Positions 36,874-52,800 of a DNA stretch of 64,000 bases are shown piece by piece (position 1 is the first letter of the stretch; each line of letters begins with the position of its first letter). The notes beneath the pieces are model-generated. The model was not told the DNA's origin, made no database searches, and saw nothing but the letters and a program-made list of their open reading frames with translations. The stretch comes from Oikopleura dioica. Its lineage: Eukaryota > Animalia > Chordata. The position numbers and the translations under genes are program-made. Location: contig OU015567.1 in assembly GCA_907165135.1 (NCBI GenBank), forward strand, positions 8,680,001 to 8,744,000. The letters are read 5' to 3'.

Positions 36874-37362
<489 letters not shown>

Positions 37363-37373
37363 CTACGCAATTT

Positions 37374-37468
37374 GGGTTGTCTCCCGCACTGGCCGCCGCG
37401 CCAAAAGCCGTTGAATCGATTTTCGCTCGCGCCAAGGCAGTTTGCGTGGGCTGGGTTGTCTCCCACAC
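37374..37468. promoter_or_regulatory. H3/H4 bidirectional promoter with two GGGTTGTCTCCC(G/A)CAC elements
   Basis: Copies at 37374-37389 and 37453-37468. A third, inverted copy at 39430-39445 lies in the H2A/H2B promoter. TATA-like TTTATATA and GTATAAA flank the pair. Confidence 0.6.
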
Positions 37469-37552: not shown

Positions 37553-37867
<315 letters not shown>

Positions 37868-38827: not shown

Positions 38828-38857
38828 GGGTTTGAAAATTCCTTCGTGAGAAGAAAT

Positions 38858-39232
<375 letters not shown>

Positions 39233-39332
39233 TCAAAAAGCGACTTTTTCTTTTTCTAGATGAGAAATTGAAATGGTGAAGAAATGGCGTTCGGAGACGG
39301 TATTTATTTGCTTGGGTGAGAAGCGCGGTGGG

Positions 39333-39497
39333 AAGAGTAGCGCTAATGAGCTGTTTCTCAGTTTGCTTCCCCGCCCACGCATTCGGGTTTCTCACTTTGC
39401 TTCACTTCGCCGCTGAAACGCGCCGCGCTGTGTGGGAGACAACCCGAATGCGTGGGCGGGGAAGCAAACTGAGAAACAGCTCATTAGCGCTACTCTT
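39333..39497. repeat. Perfect 57-bp inverted repeat in the H2A/H2B bidirectional promoter
   Basis: 39333-39389 is the exact reverse complement of 39441-39497, with a 51-bp spacer. Confidence 0.92.
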
Positions 39498-39587
39498 CTC
39501 AGCGCGCTTCTCGCCAGCCCACATAAAAAGCGAGGTCGACGTCTCATTCTTCACCATAACTTATTTTTTTCGAAAAATCAAGTCAAG

Positions 39588-39950
39588 ATGGCCGCCACCA
39601 AGGGATCGAAGAAAGCTATTGTCAAGAAGGCTCCCCCAGCCGGAGACAAAAAGAAGCGAAAGGCTAAGCGAAAGGAGTCCTACTCCATCTACATCTACAA
39701 GGTCCTCAAGCAGGTCCACCCCGACACCGGTATTTCCTCGAAGGCCATGTCCATCATGAACTCGTTCGTGTCCGACATCTTCGAGCGAATCGCCAACGAG
39801 GCCTCCCGACTCGCCAAGTACAACAAGAAGTCCACCATCTCATCCCGAGAGGTCCAGACCGCTGTCCGACTCCTTCTCCCCGGCGAATTGGCCAAGCACG
39901 CCGTTTCTGAGGGAACCAAGGCTGTCACCAAGTACACCTCCTCCAAGTAA
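39588..39950 (+). CDS. H2B: Histone H2B
   Basis: ATG at 39588: MAATKGSKK...[27 protein letters not shown]...KYTSSK*. Confidence 0.99.
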
Positions 39951-39979
39951 ATTTCCCTCTGGGATCTTTGCTAAAAACC

Positions 39980-39995
39980 GGCCCTTTTTAGGGCC
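39980..39995 (+). terminator. Histone H2B 3' stem-loop
   Basis: GGCCCT-TTTT-AGGGCC then ACAAATT. Confidence 0.93.
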
Positions 39996-40360
39996 ACAAA
40001 TTTTCAAAACAGTTTACTTCTGAATCATTACCACTCTCGTAAAAGTCTTTGTCGAAAATACTAAAGCTTTGAAACACAATTGTGGGATGCGACAATTGAT
40101 AGTTGTCAACGGTTCTCACGAACGATTTTATCTTCTTGAAAAACCAGACGATTGATCTTTCTATGGAAAAGAAAATTTTGTCTCCACTGAGGATATTGGC
40201 GAGCACTTCGGTTGGAGTCAATATCTTATCATTTTTGCTACCTCTATTGATTACTGTTAATTTTGAAGACATTCGTCAGTACCTATTTGGCCTTTGACGT
40301 TTTTTTGTTTTGCATTTTCTCCCGCAAATTGTGTTGAATCAACTGTTGATCTTCTTTTTA

Positions 40361-40903
40361 TTTAATTATTGGCTTTCAATCAAACGTGTTAAATTTAATT
40401 AACCTTTTTAAAAATAATCGATAACTGACTATATTTGATGAAAACAATTTCTAAAGCGCGTTTCCGCCGGCGAGTGGCTCATCCATCACGAAAAAGAGGT
40501 GTTGATCATCTTCAACCTTTTCTTTTCTTTTTCTCCGCCAAGGCAATCAAATCAACTCAGATCATTCCAAATTAGAGAAATTCAAAAACAAAAATAATAA
40601 AATGAAACTTCTTGGCATTTTTCTCACACTTGCAGTTCACGCTTCTTACGGGTGTGCCGATTTCGATGAAAATGAAATTAGTGTTTCGATGCCAGCTCTT
40701 TCGATAAAAATACCAGGAATTGAAAAATTGCAAAGAGAACTCGTCAGATTCAGAGAAAAATTCAAGCTCGCCGATAACGATCGAAAACGGCTGCGTTTTG
40801 AAATTATAGAGCTGCGAAAAAGCATCGACGAAAGCCGGAAACAATCGGAAAAATCGGCGGAGGAAATCAAAGAATCAATTAAAAACTCGTTCACGGAAGA
40901 AGT
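40361..40903 (+). repeat. Segmental duplicate (about 540 bp) of the promoter and first exon of the fibrinogen-domain gene at 45363-45905
   Basis: Near-identical upstream sequence and near-identical first 101 codons (MKLLGIFLTLAVHASYG...KNSFTEEV). Confidence 0.95.
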
Positions 40904-41093
40904 AAATCTCCCTCCGGGATCTTTGCAAAAACAGGCCCTTTTTAGGGCCACAAATTCTCAAATTATTCTTCCACTTTCCAAATTGAAAAACAGAGCTTTG
41001 AAGTATCGTTCTATTGGTGTAAGATTGGGAGGTGACATTTCATTAGACAAGGAAACCGGGTGGAAACCGTCGAACTGTCAGAGCAACCAGTAA
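40602..41093 (+). CDS. Chimeric ORF: signal peptide and coiled coil fused to an H2B-type 3' UTR
   Basis: The 163-aa ORF matches the 45604 ORF up to FTEEV, then runs into sequence matching the H2B 3' end. Expression and function unknown. Confidence 0.5.
   Translation: MKLLGIFLTLAVHASYGCADFDENEISVSMPALSIKIPGIEKLQRELVRFREKFKLADNDRKRLRFEIIELRKSIDESRKQSEKSAEEIKESIKNSFTEEVNLPPGSLQKQALFRATNSQIILPLSKLKNRALKYRSIGVRLGGDISLDKETGWKPSNCQSNQ
40934..40949 (+). terminator. Orphan histone-type stem-loop with no histone gene upstream
   Basis: GGCCCT-TTTT-AGGGCC-ACAAATT, preceded by about 35 nt resembling the H2B stop and 3' UTR. Confidence 0.85.
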
Positions 41094-41445
41094 AAACGGT
41101 TCTCGAACGAGTTTTTTCTTCTTTATCTTTAGAAAATCTTTTTCTCTTGAACTCGAAGTTGGAGAGAGACTCGTTATGACAATAGAAGAAGAGAATTTTA
41201 GAAAAATCAGCCCGATTTTTCAGACTCGAGTCAGGGTAATTGGAAGTTTAATAAGTTATAAAAAGAAATAAATTTGATAAAAAGTGCATTGATTGCGACT
41301 GCATTGGTGTTTTGAGGCAAAAGGGGAGGAAGGTTTATTTACTGCCAGAAAAAGTATTGACAACCCGCAGCATTCATACTCAAGAATATGATATCAGAAG
41401 ACTAGAGAAGAAGAAAACGTGGACGAAAAAGGTCACCGAAAAAAT

Positions 41446-44400
41446 GAGCCTGGCTAAACATGGAAACGCTACGGATCCACAGCAATACAGTTACCTCACA
41501 CTTGGCTCAATTTTTTGGATAACGGTGATGCTTATAGGTAGCATTCTTGTTGGTATGGTGAATTTTCATCAATTTTAAGCAAATGTCGGATCTTTGGAGA
41601 GATCACGCGGTCGCACAACATTTTTGAGTTCGACCTGTAATCGAAATTACAAGAAATGCGTACAGATTATATCGATGGACTATTGCGGTCATCTGATGAG
41701 ACAGTGTCATGAAACAAAAGAATTCATTCTTCCCGAACAAATTTCGATAATAAAATCAAATGAGAAGAAAATCCCTAAGTTCGATGAAGAAGAGAATCAA
41801 GTGAATCTCGACCGCTGCCGTAAGAAACAGTTTTATGATCAGAAAATTTGCCGTCATCTTTGTTCAAAGACACTGGTTTTGAGATCAACAAGGAGAACGG
41901 CGTTGTCCAACTGTGAAACGATATGTTTCCAGCTCACTAAATCATTTGATTCCGCGGGAGAAGTTTGCCCAACTCAGAAATACTGTCTCACTGGCTGCCC
42001 ATGTCCTTTCTACGAGTGTGAAAAATTTGAGTCACGTCAAAAACTCATTCCTGCTTTTGATTTGCAAACTTACAAAAAAGGCAATGCGTCGGATAGCAGA
42101 ATATCGAATGAAACGAATGAAGACATTGGAGCGATAACTGGTCGTTGGTACGATAGAACATTTAAATACGAAAGCTTTCCTATTATTTTGTCTGATTTTC
42201 GCGGAAACGTTAAACAGATTGATACTTCTGATTTGTTCCTTCATGAATGTTTTTCTGATATGAAATACCTATATAATTTATATAATATACATCAAGTCAA
42301 TAAAAATACGAAAGTCAACTGGTGCCACTTATCTCGAAGGAAGGCACTATTTGGTCGATGCTTTTGGGAATTTGATGAAAGTAAGAGAAAATGGAGATGA
42401 TACGATATTTATTGAGAATCGAAGAAATGACATGTACGTTTATAAATATTTTAATCACAGTAGTAATCTTACTAGGGGATTTTTTATTTTTCACTTTGGA
42501 TCGTCTATCGGAACACATCAAATTGAGATACGTCGAGAGGATAATGGCAGAAAAGTGTTTCCAGTGGTGGTTATCTGGAAAAGGTCGAAAGAGATAGAGT
42601 GACTCAGTTACATTATTTATTTTTTTGACCGGTTTAAGTTCCCCTACCGGGCGTGATAGCAAATGCTTTTACTACGCTCCGGATTACAACTTGAACCGGT
42701 TAGAGGAAGCCCAAGGCCTCATTGCGAACAGACACTACAACGCGAAAGTTTCTTCAGTCAGCTTTAAAGGTGTTTTCTATCTAATGAGTGTTAGAATGGG
42801 GGACTACTACGTCAAGCTCTCAAAAACGATTGCATTGAACAGAATTCGAAGAAGCGAAGAATTAGAGAAAGGATGGAGAAAGAGCCAAATCAATTTTCCA
42901 GCAGAATTTCGTGACTTAGACCCTGTTCATGTGGTGCCATTGAATAGGGTTTGATTTCGTAATTTTTCTTTATATTTCATATTGAAAACTTATGAAAGAT
43001 TGATGTCGGAAGAATGCTACTGATTTTTGTTTCGAGAAGTATCGAACTTTCTAATACATTGTACTCAGTGTTACTCGAGGCAGATGAACAGTTTTTTACT
43101 GTCGGCAGCGAATGGATAGGTTCACTCGTTGAATACGAAGAAGAATCCATCTGTTACTCGAAGATGTTTTCTTCGGACGATCTTTTTTACACAAATCTCG
43201 GTGGGATCATTAACGATGAATGCGAGTACTTCGTCGATGGAATCATCAATAACGAAAAAATATTCCTTCAAAATTACGTTTTTGATGTTAGATTTGAAGT
43301 AGTATTTAATTTTGGAACGGATAAACAATATTTAGTTAGTAGAAATAACGTCAATACCATATTTCGAGTCCAAATTAAATTCTCTTAAAAGAACAAATCG
43401 AGATCGAGTTCATACAGAAAAAAGCGGAGAAAAAGATGTACGTGACGAGCAATCCATTTTTCACTTTTCATGATGATGTCTTTCCTGCCTTTCAGAAAAA
43501 TGCTGTGTTTCAGCGAAGATATCCTAAGCCGAGCCCATATGAGAAGACAATAATTCCGGATAAGTTATTCTCGTCGCTAAGAGAACTTACACACATTTCA
43601 ACTGTTAAAATTAAAAATAATGGAACTGAATATTTTCAATTCGATATTCATCACAATAAGAATTTACGCCTTTCAAAAGAAAAAGAAATTATTGGATGCA
43701 AGTTCGTTGACGGAACGACTGTTGTCAGCTTTAGAATACGAGAAAGGGGCTCGATTTGGATTGATTCTGATTATTTTGATGAGCGATTTGTGTTAAAATT
43801 AAACAAAGATGGATTAACAAAGTTGGGCTTCCAAGTTAATTCAAATCATTCAATGGAATCGTCATTTTTCGAAGTTTTTGAGGGACTTGTTGATTTTTAT
43901 TTAGAATTTATAATTCTCTTCAAAAATCTCAACTTTTAAAGATTCATAAGAAAAAAAGAGAAGTAAAATCAAAGAGTGAAATGACGGGTCTTGCAAAAAT
44001 TGAAAACAAAAGACTCCGCGTTTTTAAGTCCGACCTTGCCGTTAATATCACAAATTTCATATATTCTATCAAATCAAGCCAGATAAATGTTCTTCTTCCT
44101 GAGGCTTCTGGACTTGACCGGTCATATAGTTTTATTCCTCATGGAACAATCATGAGCAGAATATTTTTGAACGCTCCCACTGCTTTTTATAGAGGAAATA
44201 TTGTATCTGAATATATATATTTCTCAAGACATGCTCTTGTTAATGATCAGCTTCACGTCTTTGGAGGCATTTATGATGCTCAGAAGGTAATTTCAGCAAT
44301 TTGAAATAGAGCAACGCAAATTTTCACTTATAATATTTTATACAGATTGCTCGGTTGGACAAATGTCAATTTACGGAATTATCTGTGCGACTTGGTTTTT

Positions 44401-45185
44401 CTTATCTCTTTGGACATACAGCGTTAACTGTTGATAAAGGAACCAAAGGTTAAATACTTTATCAAATATTAGAGCCCATGCAAAAAGTAATAAATTGGTT
44501 ATCTCAGATAACTTATCTGACAAATAATATTTTTAACAAACGTATTATTTATTTTTATTTAAGCGATGATATGTAACGGTAATAAGGAGAAAGCTTGTGA
44601 GATATTTGATGGATTTACCCTGACAATAACCTTTCCCACGAAAGAATCTTACTACTATCGTGAATTGGGCCTTTACAATGGTCGTCCGACTGTAATAGGA
44701 GGACAGTTAGCAGAAGGACTAGTGCAAATGCTGACCAGTGAGAAGTGGATTTCATTGCAAGATCATCCAGAGTTAGTGAGAAAATCGTTAACGCTGTGAA
44801 ATAAAGTTAAGATCGATCTTCGATTGTTCGGTGGTCAGCATGGATTCTGGAAGCCTTTTGACTATTGGAGGATCAATTTCTTCTTTCGATCAACCTTACG
44901 ATAGAATCTTTCGATTGACCAACAATAAGTGGACTTCTTTAGGCTCCCTTTTAAAAGTAAAATAAGTGTATCTTTCTTGAAGCTTTCAAAACTTCATCTT
45001 TATTCATTTTTAAGAAAGTTATCTCTCCGTCAGCGATATCATTTGGCGATTCTATTTTCGTATTCCCTGGAAAAGTAAGCAAATATGTCGGAACTCAGAA
45101 CTTGATTTCGGAAAAATATGAGTTTCCAATTCAAAAAATTCAACTAGGTCGAGGTCTCACCATATTTTCTCCTGTTAACTAGTGG
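41446..45185 (+). CDS. Uncharacterised large membrane-anchored protein with a Cys-rich module and a propeller/kelch-like C-terminus
   Basis: N-terminal hydrophobic segment (LGSIFWITVMLIGSILVG), Cys cluster CPTQKYCLTGCPCPFYEC, and later repeats HVFGG, PTVIGG and LTIGG. Exon joins are not all resolved, so it could be two genes or partly decayed. Confidence 0.45.
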
Positions 45186-45603
45186 CAAGAATGTAAAGAA
45201 ATCAGAAAGAACTAAGCCTGACCCTTGAAAAAGATTCCGACGAAAATTTTCATTCAACTTATGTGATTGCCGAGCAAGGAGCAGAAAGCTTTAATCCGAT
45301 TATTTTTGTTACCCCTGTAAATTACTGTTATAAGTTAAGAATCTGATATTTTACCCTCTCAGTTTAATTATTGGCTTTCAATCAAAACGAGTTTAATTAA
45401 ATTAACCTTTTAAAAATAATCGATAACTGACTATATTTGATGAAAACAATTTCTAAAGCGCGTTTCCGCCGGCGAGTGGCTCATCCATCACGAAAAAGAG
45501 GTGTTGATCATCTTCAACCTTTTCTTTTCTTTTTCTCCGCCAAGGCAATCAAATCAATTCAGATCATTCCAAATTAGAGAAAATCAAAATCAAAAATAAT
45601 AAA

Positions 45604-48600
45604 ATGAAACTTCTTGGCATTTTTCTCACACTTGCAGTTCACGCTTCTTACGGCAGCGGCGATTACGATGAAAATGAAATTAGTGTTTCGATGCCAGCTC
45701 TTTCGATAAAAATACCAGGGAATGAAAAATTGCAAAGAGAACTCGTCAGATTCAGAGAAAAATTCAAGCTCGCGGATAACGATCGAAAGCGGCTGCGTTT
45801 TGAAATCATAGAGCTGCGAAAAAGCATCGACGAAAGCCGGAAACAATCGGAAAAATCGTCCGAAGAAATCAAAGAATCAATCAAGAACTCGTTCACGGAA
45901 GAAGTCAGAGAAAAGAGAAAAAACTTAGAGGAGGAGTTTAAAGAATCAATGGAGACATTTCAGTTTGAGCTGAAAAATTCGTTGGTTGATTCAGAGAATG
46001 GCTTAAATTGAGTTGAATCGAGTTTGTTTTCGTGAAAAATAAAGCCAAAAGAAAGTTGGTAAATTTGGAAACGACAGTACGCTACTAGGTTATTCAATTA
46101 ATTAGAGCCAATCAATGAGTGTTTGTTTTAGCTAAATCGTTGGTTTCGATGACCTCGATGATTGACATGGTCACACGCGACTTTCAGAAATACCTTGATG
46201 ACTTTCATGAGAAGATTTCGAGCCAGAATTATACATAAGGGTTTCTCATATGAGCTTCAAATGGAACATATTTATTTGTCTTCTTATTATGAAACGGCTA
46301 TTAAACCCGAAATGAACTCAGTCCTGTCCTGAGCCAACACCAGTTAATCCAAGTTCTAGCCAGCCTCTGAAGTACTCCTCACCATCTCAGTCAAAGTTAT
46401 CAAGACTATTTCGAAGTCTTCTTCAATAATTGTGCCTTTAAATTAATTTGCTTGATAATTGAATGAAAGCAAGCTCAAGTGAAAATTGACAACGAGGTAA
46501 CTTTATTGCATATTTTAATGATAAACAGTCGTTAATTTTAGAATTCTGGCGCTTCGATTCTCAAGTGTTATCAGTGTTGCGAGGAAATCCCAATCACGAA
46601 TGATATGATTGCAAGTCTTCTAGGTCTCCAACTGCCAGGTGATCTTTCATTTTAAAAGTAAAAAGCGTAACTGAAGACATAGACGACTCATCCTTGATGC
46701 AAGACAGTGACTCAACCTCAAGTACCTCACAAGCGCAAACAGTCACGACACAGTCTCCAACAACAACTAAGACCAGTTCGACTCCGAGCTCAGTTTCAAG
46801 TCCGGCATCAACTAGCACTCCCAGTACGGATTCATCCACGGCTTCTGTAATTACAGCTGATGATGATGCTTTTGACGATCACGGTACTTCCATAGGTCCG
46901 GGTTCTCATAATTTTTAAAAAATTTTTTGATATCGAAAGTCGACAACTCGAGATAAGACAATGCCCCAGTAGACGTATCAACCAATGTCGCCGACAATAA
47001 AGACCCAGAACTCAAATCAATCAAACCCAGTCCACCACCAACCAAATCCCTAGAAAAAATCTGCAACGAAGACTGCCTCAGCGATTGCGCAGAGTACCAC
47101 AGAGCTGGCTTCACAAAATCCGGAGTTTATCGAATCAAACTGGCAGTTTACAAAGTAATCGAAGTCTTCTGTGACATGGATACTGATGGTGGAGGGTGGA
47201 CAACAATTCAGCGAAGAGTCAATGGCTCCGTCGATTTTAACCGACCTTGGGCTGATTACAAAAATGGGAAAAGGTCGAAAAGGTCGGTACTGTTGCTTGA
47301 ATGAAAGTAACGCAATTTCTCTTTAAATTGTTGCTGCTACGTAGTGATTTAAAAATAATTCTCCGGAATTGCGTCATTGCCAAAAATTAGACAGTGAAAA
47401 ATTTCTACTTTTGTCCTCAGTGCCCTAGATATTCACAAATAGATCGAGGATAAATAGTTATGAGCATGTTAAATATATTTCCATCGATTCGCGCCGGAAT
47501 GACGAAGTGGTTGCTATTTTTGGTCGAGCGTTTATTTTGCATCGAGATTGATATTCAAATGATTTGCTGATCCCACTTTTCACGTGAAAATGTAAAGCGG
47601 CAATAAACTGATTTAAACATTTCTTCCTCCGAGACTCAATACAATAACTTTTTTCTCTAACAAAAGAGTAAAAATTGAATGCCCGAACTATAAGTTAGGG
47701 TTAGGGTTATGACACGGATCTCAAGATTTTTCATCTAAATAACTCCTCATGTGACGAATTTGACCAATAATTTCTTGATTTTGTTTTTAATGAACGAAAC
47801 AAGAGACGTTTAACTACAGTTCTTCAACTTTAATATTAAGGGGATCACTATGTTAAGCCTTGAAAACGATCATGCCTTTTCTGAGTGTGAAAGCATTTTC
47901 TGACCTTGTGAAGATTCGGTGATATCGAAGGAGATCACTGGCTTGGCCTGGAGAACATGTACAGACTGACTCGCCAGGAAAAGTAATCAAGTCTTTTTTG
48001 AACGTGAAAGTATCGTTTTAGTTGGCTTCTATTAATACTGTCTGGTTGAAAGTTTCAACGTCTAATAATAAGTTTAGATCGACGCTGAGAATAGACCTCA
48101 CGGATTTCTTAGAAACGGTTCCAATCATGACCTTCTTTTTTCCATTTTTGAAATGACAGTAATGAACCATTTGTACAGGAAACTCACGCTACGCCGAGTA
48201 CGCGCGCGTCCGAATCAACTCGGAGAAAATGTTCTATCAGGCGCGGTTCTAAAGGGAAAAATACGAAATCACGTGCGTGAATAGTCAGAATAGCCTTTTT
48301 CGTCAAGTGTACGTAAGTTGATCGCTTATTTCTGTCGGCTGCCACGAGGTGGAAAAATTAAACTTTTCGCGTCATCGTGGAAAATAAAGCGCGCGCTTTT
48401 CCGAAAAAGGGGAAAAACTCGCTTATCATCGTTGACTAGATCTAATTGATAACTGGAACTTCCAGGGTAATTCTCAACGGGAATTTATAATTGATCGTAA
48501 AAATCATTCTTCTTATTAAAAAAGGGATGACTCTTCAGGGGAATATGGAATCTCTTAAAATGGGGTTGGGTTCGGGTCAGGGTTAGGGTCCCTAACCCTA

Positions 48601-49890
48601 ACCCCCGGAATCGGCAACTTTCACTTGAAATAACTTTCGTTTGGCCTTATGGATTAATATAATTCAAATTGCATATAGAAGTTTATACCTTCATTGCAAT
48701 TCGCAAGTAGCTTTACTCATTTTGAAATGTCAAACATGCACTCAGGGGCTCTTGAAAAATTCGAATTTTTGAAAAACGCCTTTTAGGGGTATTTTCAACG
48801 CGAAATAACTTTTTATTGGGCTTTTGCTTTGCTCTAAAAACTAGAGGATCAAGAAGAATGGACGCTAATCTACAGTTGCAAGTAGCTTTAGCATGATTAA
48901 TCAAGTTATAAAATTTTTTTCCCATGAAAAACTTTTCAAGTCCATTTATGCCAATTTTCGGCATTAAATTGCTCTCTAGCGGCAAATAACGGCCGAAAAA
49001 TTTTGTGCGGTCATTATATTCTTAATCAGTACATTCTAAGCTTTCTATAGACCCCTTATTTGTCTATTTTCGATGACATTGAAAAGTCGAAAAAAATACG
49101 ATTTTCACACTAAGTACAATTTACATGCATTTTTGCAATTTTCGAAGGGCAAAATTTCGGGTTAAGATGTTTGTTAGGGGGTACTATAATACATAAAAAT
49201 GATCCTCAGATAACGAGGAATCTAAATATGCGACAAAGGGACCCGTTATTAAGATTTGAAATTCCGGGGGAGGACCCCTTAAGGTTGGGTTAGGGTTAGG
49301 GTTAGGGTTGGGGTTGGGGTTGGGGTTTTGGGTTTTTATTATTGTTAGATCCACGAAAAAGCTAATGGTTTGGGGAAAATACTCTGGCACAGTTCAGGAC
49401 TCTCTGGAACGGCTCAATCTATTTTCAATTCAATTTTGCTCATCTTTTTTAATTTTATTTGCGATTAAATTTTAAAACAATAGAGCAAAAGCCCCAAAAT
49501 AGCAATACTCGTCCGCATTCGACCATAATCAGAAGAACTTCACTACATTCGATAGCGACAACGACAATTACGGTGGAGATATTATTTTTAACCCAACCGA
49601 AGCAATTATTTCTCAGAGAAGGGAAATTGCGCATCGCACTACAAAAATGGCTGGTGGTTTGACAAGTGCTTCGCTGCCAATCTCAATGGGAAATTCTACC
49701 ACGAGCCGTATGAAAACAAAATGAGGGATGGAATTTACTGGGGTCGATGGCCAAACAAGCTGGAAGGGAAATACATGGTCTTTACTGTAAGAATCTCATG
49801 AGCAACCGGGTTTTGACAAAGTAATTTTAGTACATCGACATGAAAGTTCGACCAGAAGATTTCAAGTCAGCGGCAATGAAAAACGCATAG
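45604..49890 (+). CDS. Secreted fibrinogen-related-domain protein (angiopoietin/ficolin-like architecture)
   Basis: Signal peptide, coiled coil, Ser/Thr-rich linker (46694-46918), then DCAEY...GVY...[37 protein letters not shown]...HWLGLEN...FTTFDSDND...NCA...GWWFDKCFAANLNG...GIYW...MKVRP. Confidence 0.85.
49283..49332 (+). repeat. Interstitial telomere-like (TTAGGG)/(TTGGGG) tract
   Basis: GGTTGGG(TTAGGG)3 followed by TTGGGG repeats. Related short tracts at 1149-1261, 47694-47709, 48562-48605 and 51835-51855. Confidence 0.8.
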
Positions 49891-52800
49891 AAAAGAGAAT
49901 CTCTTCCTTTATGTACAAGAACCTTCTCTGTAAATACAAAAAGCATACGAACGAAAGAAAAAATCATCTGAGAAACGCGTCAGAAAGGGACCTTCCGTCA
50001 GAGAGCAAACAAAAAAGTCAGACGATGGTTTCCTTTCGAACACGTTCTCTTCATACTTTTTTTTGAGAAAGAGAGTGTTCCAAAAATAGTTCCGACAGCT
50101 GACGAGAGTGATTAGGATTTAGGTCATATTCAGGTAAGAAAAGGTTCTTCGAGAAAAGGCTAAAAATTTGATTTTTTGATTATTTTGAAAAGAAAACCTC
50201 TTATTGAACTTTCAACTGTCAAAAATACTGAGTCCAAAGTTTCCTAGGTACTGTACGGGGAGGGTATTTTTTGCGTCTCGTCACTTCCTCTTCTGTTATC
50301 AGCGAAATAAAGTACAAGCTCGCGCAGACTTTGCACTACTGGGACCAGGTGATGGGCACGATCGCTACCCTCCCCTGCTTGAAGCGTGCTTTGCTTCTTG
50401 TGGCATTTTGAAAAAAAGTGAGAAAGAGACAAAACACGTGAGTGGACCCACAAGCCTCGAGGCTAGGACCCCGAGAACCCTAAAAATAGCCAGGAGGGGT
50501 ATTTTTAAACCCACCAGCCAACACGCGCGCAAATCCAAGGGCACAAACTTTTCACACGCAACCCATGAGAAGGAATCGTTAAGGGTGTACCCAACGCTTT
50601 TCACGTTCGAAATTATCACAATAATCTCGATCCCTTAACCCTTAGAGACCTCCATAATTTGCTGGCAACGCACTTTTTTACCCGTAATTTAAATTAATGA
50701 AAAGATCATTTACGCTTTTTTTCACGCGTATTTACGAACAACAGGTGGTCTATTTTTAGGTGAGATACAAGTGATTTGCAATTTGTTTTTTACTCAAAGA
50801 TATTTTGCGCTAAACTTGTCACCTTTTCCGAATAATCAAAAGAAAGGAGCATGTGTACATAATCCTATCTACAATTGCAATTTGCAACGTAAGAATTTAT
50901 CAAAAAAAGCCGGCAAGAATGTTCTATTTTTATCTGAAAATTCGGAATAAAGGACGATTTCATAAAATCAGGCGCAGTTCTTGATCCTTCGAGTTTGTCA
51001 GTCAGACAAAATGTCAAGGGATCATGCTCGGACTTAAGGGTCTCAACAGGGGTTAAAATCGCTGGATGGGAATTCCTAGGTTGACATTTGAAAGGAATTT
51101 TATCGGTAGAAAAATGATTATGATTTAATTTGAACTGATAATGACATTTTTCGAGCAGAATCGGAACACCAAAATATCCATTTTTTCAAGGAGATAATTT
51201 CAACTTGCGATAAGCTCAGCAGGAGCGCAAGATGACGCATTTTAAATGTGATAAGAACTTTTTCAGCAGTTTGCTTTATTGACTGCTAGAATCGATGATT
51301 TATTAACGATGAAACGTTGTTTATCGCGTTAAAAAGATGTTCTGACGTTCTCCGAGTATCAGATTAACTCTGGGATTAAAAATATCGTCCTATTTTGAAT
51401 CTGGAATCTGGAAGTTTTTAAAAAAAGAAAATCTGTCCGTTCCAGCAAGGCATCATTTTGTCCGGCGTTATTTTTAAATCCGGGCGGATCAGTTTCTTTA
51501 ATTTATATTTAACTCGCTTCTGTAAATCAAGTTCGATTGACGATCTGTCCAAAAGTGTCAATTATCGGCAGCGTTGCCACTCATAATTATCCATTTTAAA
51601 ATGTCATCCAGCGACTCAGAGGTCGAGACCTCATAATCCCCTTCGTACGTATCTTTTATACAATCAATAATTGTCTGAAAACTGGTCAATAAGCCTGGAA
51701 ATGTTCTTTATTATCAAAAAAGGGACGCACCTTATATAGGGCCAGGGGAGCGAAGCTCTTAGGTTTAGGCCTTAGGTAGGGCCTCTAACGAAGCGGGAAG
51801 CTATGCGGGCAAAGCCCATTGCCAATGGGCCATTGGTTAGGGTTAGGGTTAGGGGCAGCCCGAATTATAATCGTTCTTACTAAGCAAATATGTTGAAAAA
51901 TTGAAGGTTTTGAAAGCTTTTATGGCAATTTATCTTGGTGAATTATTAATTTAAAGCAGGAGAAAAAGTGTCCGGCTGTTTTTTTTCTTCTTGTCTAGGA
52001 AAAAAGCGGAGTTCCGGTTCGTGGAAACAATTAGATTACGATTGCGTGTTGTGTAGCAGTTCAGGTTGAGTAGCGGTCTTTCAACTCAGAATTCGTAATT
52101 ACATTTTTGAAGCGAGTTTATGGCTCCTGGGTCTGATTTTGTCGTTACAAGTTAACTCAAACTACTACACACCTCAGCATAAGAGATAGCCAGCGATAAC
52201 TAACTACCGGAAGAGGGAGAGAGAGAAAAATATATAGATTGTGTTATCTACAGGAATACAAAATAAGAAAGAAGTTTATACAGAGAGATTTTCTTCGACA
52301 AAGAATTAATTCAAGGTTTGAGGCTTTTCATTGATGAATTTAAATATTTTTCCCTGAATATAAAGTGTTTCATCTCTTAGCTATCATCTTTGTAAGAAAA
52401 ATTCAATCAAAGAACAACACTGAGGCACTTAAAATCTTAAAGAAAGTGATAAAGAAAAAAGGTGCAAAAAAGAGCATATCAGTATTTTCTCTCTTGTCTA
52501 TCATTTGCCCTGGCTTTTTGAGCTCTCGGAAACAGGGCACACTTGTAAGTTGGTAAGTTGCGCGCACCGCCGATTACACAAAAGCCTAGAGCTGATAAGG
52601 GGTCGTACTGATAAGGCACGCGGGAATTGGGACAATTAAGGTTTTCACTTTTCAATTTAAAGGGGGCCTAAATATCGATGTTTAATAATTAAGATTGTTG
52701 TTGATTTTTGTTGTTTTTATTAATCGAAGGTGGGCCTGTTTAGTAGCGGAAATAAGGTTCACGATTTATGATTTTTACAAGCTTCGGCCGGATGATACAA

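Follow-up and report, generated by a model that had tools for sequence, protein, structure and literature searches.

Background

Chimeric genes that form at the junctions of partial tandem duplications are well described in Drosophila and other animals. The stem-loop of animal histone mRNAs is, to our knowledge, regarded as essentially exclusive to these messages. The two subjects meet in a 64,000-nucleotide (nt) stretch of Oikopleura dioica contig OU015567.1 (positions 8,680,001-8,744,000; hereafter the window), in which the 5' part of a gene for a secreted fibrinogen-domain protein is joined to the 3' end of a histone H2B gene with an intact stem-loop. The fusion is present in sequencing reads and is part of a head-to-tail repeat, and it is probably a by-product of a local segmental duplication in an O. 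dioica lineage.

The 3' end of replication-dependent histone mRNAs is formed by U7-dependent cleavage at a stem-loop (Rfam RF00032) bound by SLBP. Cross-linking of SLBP in human cells recovered essentially histone mRNAs only, and the one non-histone match to the stem-loop had negligible coverage (PMC4604434). Polyadenylated read-through transcripts of replication-dependent histone genes, with the stem-loop inside the transcript, are described in PMC5100578. Histone primary transcripts of O. dioica carry both a stem-loop and a downstream poly(A) signal and have no histone downstream element (PMC3156773), and the title of Chioda et al. 2004, cited there, says that they do not accumulate in S phase. 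The genome of this animal is also known for extreme rearrangement rates, and it is repaired by microhomology-mediated end joining without canonical non-homologous end joining (PMC11067885).

The locus shares with partial-tandem-duplication chimeras the collinear tandem units, a breakpoint in one gene joined to a breakpoint in its neighbour, microhomology at the join and intact outer parents. It differs from them in that the captured 3' part is a histone terminal processing element and not coding sequence, and in that divergence between the units is very uneven. The 6-bp stem, the U-rich 4-nt loop and the flanks are those of a replication-dependent histone 3' end; in contrast, the element lies inside a non-histone open reading frame (ORF). 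There is no histone downstream element, which O. dioica histone genes also lack.

Structure of the fusion

Copy A (40361..40903, + strand) contains the promoter, the 5' untranslated region (UTR) and the signal peptide of the fibrinogen-domain gene, together with roughly two thirds of its first helical coding exon. It aligns at a constant offset of 5002 and with about 95% identity to copy B (45363..45905, +), where the same promoter and exon part are continuous with the rest of the intact parent gene. At AAGT (40900..40903, +), similarity to the parent gene gives way to similarity to the end of H2B (last codon, stop, spacer and stem-loop). These four letters are common to H2B (39945-39948), copy A and copy B (45902-45905), and the breakpoint reads GAAGAAGT-AAATC in copy A, CTCCAAGT-AAATT in H2B and GAAGAAGT-CAGAG in copy B. 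An earlier reading made from the letters alone (the sequence-only reading) had proposed a non-histone secreted-protein gene fused to an H2B 3' end, with AAGT as the junction microhomology and about five differences from the H2B tail. The alignments confirm all three points. Block X (39945..40008, +), which holds the H2B last codon, stop, spacer hairpin and stem-loop (core 39980-39995), and block X' (40900..40962, +), which holds the copied stop, spacer hairpin and stem-loop (core 40934-40949), are 92% identical over 64 columns, with 4 substitutions and one 1-nt gap.

The chimeric ORF (40602..41093, +) has 163 codons, made up of 100 parental codons, a junction codon and 62 codons from the H2B tail and spacer. 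As the sequence-only reading had stated, the H2B TAA is out of frame, and the list of ORFs agrees that the frame runs through the stem-loop to 41093. The stem-loop has a TAG in its loop at which the ORF would stop with the H2B version; the 1-nt gap relative to H2B puts the chimera in a frame that avoids it. The chance of a 62-codon open extension after the join is about 4%, which is not a persuasive sign of function. GTAAAT, once put forward as a new splice donor, is the AAG-TAA-AT context of every H2B stop and was for this reason rejected as a novelty; it is unspliced in RNA reads from another H2B locus.

An AlphaFold model of the chimeric ORF, built from the single sequence (mean predicted local distance difference test, pLDDT, 58.5), has a hydrophobic N-terminal helix at residues 3-14 that fits a signal peptide and a long helix at residues 41-97 with pLDDT 70-92. 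Residues 110-163 stay below 50, and the new tail of the protein is predicted to be disordered. A Pfam search of the ORF gave coiled-coil-type hits only, all sub-threshold, and the fibrinogen C-terminal domain (PF00147) is absent. From 40406 on, copies A and B differ at 18 positions: 0 in 40406-40555, 3 in the remaining 5' UTR and 15 in coding sequence. Five of these 15 coding differences fall within 12 nt (40652-40663), just after the predicted signal-peptide cleavage site of copy A, where they add a lone cysteine; the cluster looks like a single complex mutational event.

Reads were compared over 39951-45950 with histone coding sequence excluded. A 4611-nt short-read contig from the public DNA run X1 spans 40827-45437 with 0 differences and holds the copy-A-specific letters (40857-40883), the AAGT join and the whole stretch from there to the copy B promoter. 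Because a k-mer contig crosses the join only if reads do, misassembly is very unlikely, and the junction stands as real DNA. In the X1 contig in which copies A and B are collapsed, read depth is about double that of the flanks. The protein database holds B-type ORFs only, with no fusion-type ORF and no record of the exact chimeric ORF, and a metagenome scan returned one B-type locus and no fusion. As far as these data reach, the chimera is apparently limited to the lineage of the window.

Tandem architecture

Two units share a series of four collinear homology blocks: the H2B tail, a 31-nt patch, an 89-nt block, and the promoter with part of exon 1. The patch of unit 1 (40108..40137, +) is homologous to that of unit 2 (41095..41123, +), the start of the second unit's spacer. 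The two are 87% identical over 31 nt, a score reached by 1 of 200 shuffles, which is weak alone but collinear with the other blocks. The sequence-only reading had seen this patch and taken it as a relic of a second H2B locus. The patch does exist; a relic H2B locus is possible but is not needed to account for it, since the patch is the next part of the second unit. The spacer block of unit 1 (40171..40259, +) and that of unit 2 (45242..45330, +) are 65% identical over 89 ungapped nt. Their score of 27 compares with 15.1 +/- 1.6 for shuffles, none of 200 reaches it, and the two are each other's sole matches within the window.

Between the second and third blocks lie 33 nt in unit 1 versus about 4.1 kb in unit 2 (41124..45241, +). 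This segment, which is confined to the second unit and contains the multi-exon gene Y, behaves as a clean indel: the alignment is clean across it, with CTT/TT microhomology at its edges. A transposon was considered for it and rejected, as terminal inverted repeats and Pfam domains are both absent. The outer edges of the tandem are intact: the H2B gene (39588..39950, +) borders the duplicated unit on the left, and the fibrinogen-domain gene is complete at the right edge.

Thus, the interval from the H2B tail through the spacer to the promoter and part of exon 1 is present twice, head to tail, and therefore the truncated copy of unit 1 abuts the orphan H2B tail of unit 2. The histone tail was not captured in isolation; the arrangement belongs to a tandem repeat. 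Either the fusion is itself the duplication junction, or a later deletion within the duplicated region produced it.

Parent gene and its upstream element

Parent gene B covers at least 45604..49620 (+) and, judged by Pfam and motifs, encodes a signal peptide, a helical region, a Ser/Thr-rich linker and a fibrinogen C-terminal domain spread over several exons. Pfam PF00147 is found on 46957-47301 with E = 1.2e-19, which confirms the proposed nature of the parent. More fibrinogen-domain motifs lie near 47915 and 49557; these are seen as motifs only, and Pfam gives no further fibrinogen-domain match on the downstream ORF pieces of gene B. A literature search pairing oikosin with fibrinogen found nothing.

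Orthologues of gene B are present on three marine-metagenome contigs. Two of them, L001 and L003, are distant (about 70% amino-acid identity, with a synonymous divergence, dS, above 2), and L013 has two amino-acid differences. Because B-type sequence continues beyond the breakpoint position in all three, the B form is ancestral and copy A is a truncated derivative. A further contig (L002) spans downstream exons of gene B, which are conserved. Neither a histone gene nor a relative of gene Y is found within 2-2.7 kb upstream of the orthologue in L001 and L003. About 63 nt (about 45988-46050) interrupt exon 1 of the parent; they are present in L013 and absent in L001 and L003, and the frame resumes after them. 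Their best-fitting boundaries are GA..AG, a non-canonical intron type reported for O. dioica.

Upstream of the coding sequence, 150 nt are identical in copies A and B (40406..40555, +, and 45408-45557). The element is found at 2608-2751 in L001 and at about 1882-2030 in L003, where it is 93-95% conserved while synonymous sites are saturated, and it is better kept than the coding sequence. In L013, its 5' half is swapped for unrelated sequence. The element matches none of the Rfam families, the best hit (E = 0.017) being far from the threshold, and covariation is absent; a known RNA was rejected on these grounds. It could be a promoter element, a 5' UTR element or an RNA of unknown type.

The copied H2B tail and its stem-loop

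The orphan stem-loop core, GGCCCTTTTTAGGGCC, lies at 40934-40949. Positions 40929-40956 comprise the flank AAACA, the stem strands GGCCCU and AGGGCC around a UUUU loop, and the flank ACAAA, and are identical to entries in Table S1 of PMC3156773. This table of O. dioica histone genes holds GGCCCTTTT 35 times, with flanks AAACC/AAACA and ACAAA, and all 16-nt hairpins of the window and their flanks match it. The AAACA variant of the chimera is thus also used in real O. dioica histone genes. Within the window, the pattern GGCCCTTTT[T/C]AGGGCC stands behind each of the H3, H4, H2A and H2B genes. Together with the orphan on the + strand, this gives five stem-loop sites, where 0.03 are expected by chance.

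The chimera stem-loop is identical to that of the window H3 gene over 29 nt and folds as predicted. It has the sequence and structure that define RF00032, namely a 6-bp GC-rich stem (GGCYCU/AGRGCC), a 4-nt U-rich loop, an A-rich 5' flank and an ACNA 3' flank. Its position is not that of the family, which lies in the 3' UTR shortly after a histone stop, because it sits inside a non-histone ORF. Its score on the Rfam Histone3 model, 31.0 bits (E = 2.5e-6), does not reach the gathering score of 34, and neither does that of the bona fide H2A stem-loop (30.8 bits); the H3, H4 and H2B stem-loops reach 34.8-35.3 bits. The shortfall comes from the downstream flank and not from the hairpin.

Two orthologous Tara contigs (L007 and L008) are identical to the window H2B over stop, spacer and stem-loop, with about 83% identity in the flank behind. 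Because of this identity, the H2B tail represents the ancestral state and the four changes in the chimera are derived. Of the H2B tails compared, the adjacent one is most similar to that of the chimera, which is compatible with both one-step and two-step models of its origin. The stretch from stop to stem-loop folds as a second hairpin, in which the stop codon is paired. The chimera retains this hairpin: the two substitutions within it sit at unpaired positions, and both hairpins still fold.

This pairing of the stop codon is seen in 9/9 sampled H2B 3' ends, which represent different loci and lineages and differ in their spacers: a hairpin immediately before the stem-loop contains the stop region AAGUAAA in paired form. 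The partner strand varies by locus (UUUACUU or UUUGCU), and Z-scores range from -0.9 to -5.9. The sites are 39945-39972 and 40900-40926 in the window and the positions just after the H2B stop in L004, L005, L007 and L009-L012. A similar hairpin is present in the H2A tail of the window (38835-38860, -). The duplication breakpoint coincides with the base of the stop-codon hairpin.

Transcription and 3' end formation

Two RNA runs with the same species label were used, both poly(A)-primed: X17, an oligo-dT bulk library of which 59% of the run was read, and X14, a single-cell library. Reads in the region fall on 40922-40957 only; on either side they continue into foreign sequence, and all have C at 40933. 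Upstream, their consensus corresponds to the ends of an H2A gene and of a different H2B gene, which places their origin at other histone loci. The two runs have no reads on the fusion and likewise none on gene B, gene Y or the unique part of the adjacent H2B tail. This result is uninformative and not negative, because the controls are equally empty, the libraries are poly(A)-selected and the runs are perhaps from a diverged lineage. The index of runs contains no RNA run that includes the stretch.

The poly(A)-primed reads of these other loci, one H2A and one H2B, do not end at the stem-loop but go on for at least 32 nt, so the sampled RNA does contain polyadenylated histone transcripts in which the stem-loop is internal. 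This agrees with PMC3156773 and, as far as a title goes, with that of Chioda et al. The sequence-only reading had also considered S-phase-regulated, non-polyadenylated processing of the chimera; in view of that paper and of these reads, such processing appears unlikely. A regulatory reading of the locus is weakened as well, because O. dioica histone transcripts are reportedly polyadenylated and not S-phase coupled.

The chimera shares with the clustered histone genes of O. dioica (PMC3156773) the stem-loop sequence, the neighbourhood of an H3/H4/H2A/H2B quartet and a downstream AATAAA. The distance differs: the first AATAAA of the chimera comes at about +316 nt past the stem-loop, compared with +81 to +101 for H4 and H2A, and H2B has none within 330 nt. 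With its intact and highly conserved promoter region, copy A is probably transcribable. The most likely RNA would run through both hairpins and be polyadenylated downstream near 41270-41300. Its product would be secreted and 163 amino acids long, with a single long helix ahead of the disordered new tail. If the RNA were instead cut at the stem-loop, it would contain no in-frame stop and would probably be lost to non-stop decay. The likely transcript would thus resemble the polyadenylated read-through histone transcripts of PMC5100578, with an internal stem-loop and poly(A) further downstream; those transcripts code for histones, whereas the chimera codes for a secreted coiled-coil fragment.

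Divergence and origin of the chimera

The favoured history, that of a by-product of local segmental duplication, can be laid out in a few steps. The duplicated interval would have run from the last codon of H2B, via the spacer, to codon 101 of the fibrinogen-domain gene, and the end of unit 1 would have been joined to the start of unit 2 at AAGT by microhomology-mediated end joining or template switching. A 4-nt microhomology at the junction fits the end-joining repair of O. dioica. The stem-loop is a passenger of the duplication and not a recruited regulatory element. Collinear units, an end-to-start join, intact outer genes and a junction present in reads are all found, as expected of a chimera formed at a duplication junction; uniform divergence is not.

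Several observations weigh against this history. Identity between the units ranges from 65% to 100%, whereas a single neutral duplication predicts uniform divergence. Mismatches amount to 35% in the spacer block, about 10% in the H2B-tail spacer and 0 in the 150-nt upstream element, and the excess in the spacer block is significant against synonymous sites (P = 0.009) as well as against the tail spacer (P = 0.003). Between copies A and B, dS is 0.19 and the non-synonymous divergence (dN) 0.021, a ratio of 0.11, with a synonymous identity of about 84%. Changes were polarised with L013 and the distant orthologues, of which L001 and L003 polarise amino-acid changes only. Five non-synonymous and 6 synonymous changes fall on the lineage of copy A, and 0 and 4 on that of copy B. 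Neutrality predicts a ratio of about 3.7 to 1, and at most 5 of 11 non-synonymous changes on the copy-A lineage has a binomial P of 0.016, or 0.04 if the five-change cluster at 40652-40663 is counted as one event. If copy A were unconstrained, zero changes in its 150-nt element would have a P of 7e-7 to 6e-4. These constraint statistics rest on 11-16 substitutions, and the substitution patterns give a modest hint of past constraint on copy A. The uneven divergence and the substitution pattern call for gene conversion, for copy A having been functional over a long time, or for selection that acts on it now. If present selection were the case, the chimera would be more than a by-product.

Under the simplest history, one tandem duplication with the fusion as its junction was followed by gene conversion between the copies; the chances for and against this sequence of events are about balanced. 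The fusion could also have arisen in two steps, a history that takes up the relic H2B locus of the sequence-only reading and is possible but on the unlikely side. In this case, an older and larger tandem duplication would have given a second H2B gene and a full-length fibrinogen-domain paralogue, both of which remained functional while selection and concerted evolution preserved their similarity. Then, in recent time, a microhomology-mediated deletion would have taken out the stretch between exon 1 of the upstream paralogue and the last codon of the second H2B, fusing the remnants. Such a course accounts for the uneven divergence without any function of the chimera, as promoter, coding part and H2B tail would have been kept while the spacer decayed, and it fits the synonymous-rich changes on the copy-A lineage. 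H2B tails with related spacers at other loci show, moreover, that several such H2B copies exist. On the other hand, it requires two events, the deleted stretch, at least about 4.5 kb long, has left no trace, and the intermediate state is found in no lineage in the protein database or the metagenome scan.

A different explanation of the constraint, which we regard as distinctly unlikely, is that the chimera is a maintained, expressed young gene. Its truncated, helical product would be secreted and could pair with the full-length protein via the coiled coil of the latter, and the H2B-derived hairpins would affect mRNA 3' end formation, stability or translation. The identity of the upstream element at 150 of 150 nt, the intact ORF, a dN/dS of about 0.2 on the copy-A lineage (P = 0.016-0.04) and the 62 codons that stay open past the join, about 4% by chance, all speak for it. 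So do the spacer-hairpin substitutions at unpaired positions, the folding of both hairpins and the AAACA flank of real histone genes. Yet the two RNA runs have no read on the chimera, with the controls silent too, and no indexed RNA run contains the stretch. The statistics, on 11-16 changes, can be mimicked by gene conversion, no orthologous fusion is found in the protein database or the metagenome scan, the predicted tail is disordered and the reading frame of H2B is not used. Still more specific, and highly improbable, is a maintained gene in which the H2B-derived double hairpin would serve SLBP-dependent 3' end formation or translational control while the truncated coiled coil modulates the full-length protein. 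An assembly artefact, in the form of a falsely duplicated haplotype or a chimeric join, has the least probability and is hardly credible. O. dioica is highly heterozygous, false tandem duplications occur in assemblies, and run X1 is possibly from the same sample as the assembly. However, the X1 contig runs through copy-A letters, the junction and 4.5 kb beyond with 0 differences, the collapsed contig has about double depth, and the spacers of the two units, at 65% identity and with a 4.1-kb indel, are too different for alleles.

Neighbouring genes and repeats

The histone quartet to the left of the chimera consists, besides H2B, of the H3 gene (36874..37284, -; stem-loop 36834-36849, Rfam Histone3 35.3 bits), the H4 gene (37556..37867, +; stem-loop 37914-37929) and the H2A gene (38858..39229, -; stem-loop 38812-38827), all taken from the list of ORFs. 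The H2B protein of the window has exact matches on nine marine-metagenome contigs, all shorter than 0.9 kb, and the window differs by one base from a published O. dioica H2B.1 primer. A 117-nt inverted repeat (39273-39389 and 39441-39557), 83% complementary, fills the divergent H2A-H2B promoter, and a related motif lies in the H3-H4 spacer (37370-37400).

Gene Y (41312-44800, +) is a multi-exon gene with a likely N-terminal membrane anchor, a Cys-rich exon of 268 amino acids and no Pfam hit. At least 40 homologues at 42-70% identity are present in marine metagenomes and Logan contigs, so gene Y is a member of a large unnamed family. Interstitial telomere-like repeats of the TTAGGG type are found at 48564-48589, 49283-49332 and 51830-51855, the first two between domain exons of gene B.

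Concluding remarks

In sum, this duplication chimera is genuine, apparently limited to one lineage and of unproven function, and it carries an intact stem-loop as a passenger. An ordinary duplication junction explains how the chimera came about. A natural non-histone ORF with an intact histone stem-loop is a rare natural experiment on this element uncoupled from histone coding. O. dioica is a useful animal for the question, as its histone mRNAs reportedly keep the stem-loop yet are polyadenylated and not coupled to S phase. The chimera also pointed to two conserved features nearby, the 150-nt upstream element and the hairpin that pairs the H2B stop codon. Its value lies in a clean, datable microhomology-mediated rearrangement in a genome known for extreme scrambling.

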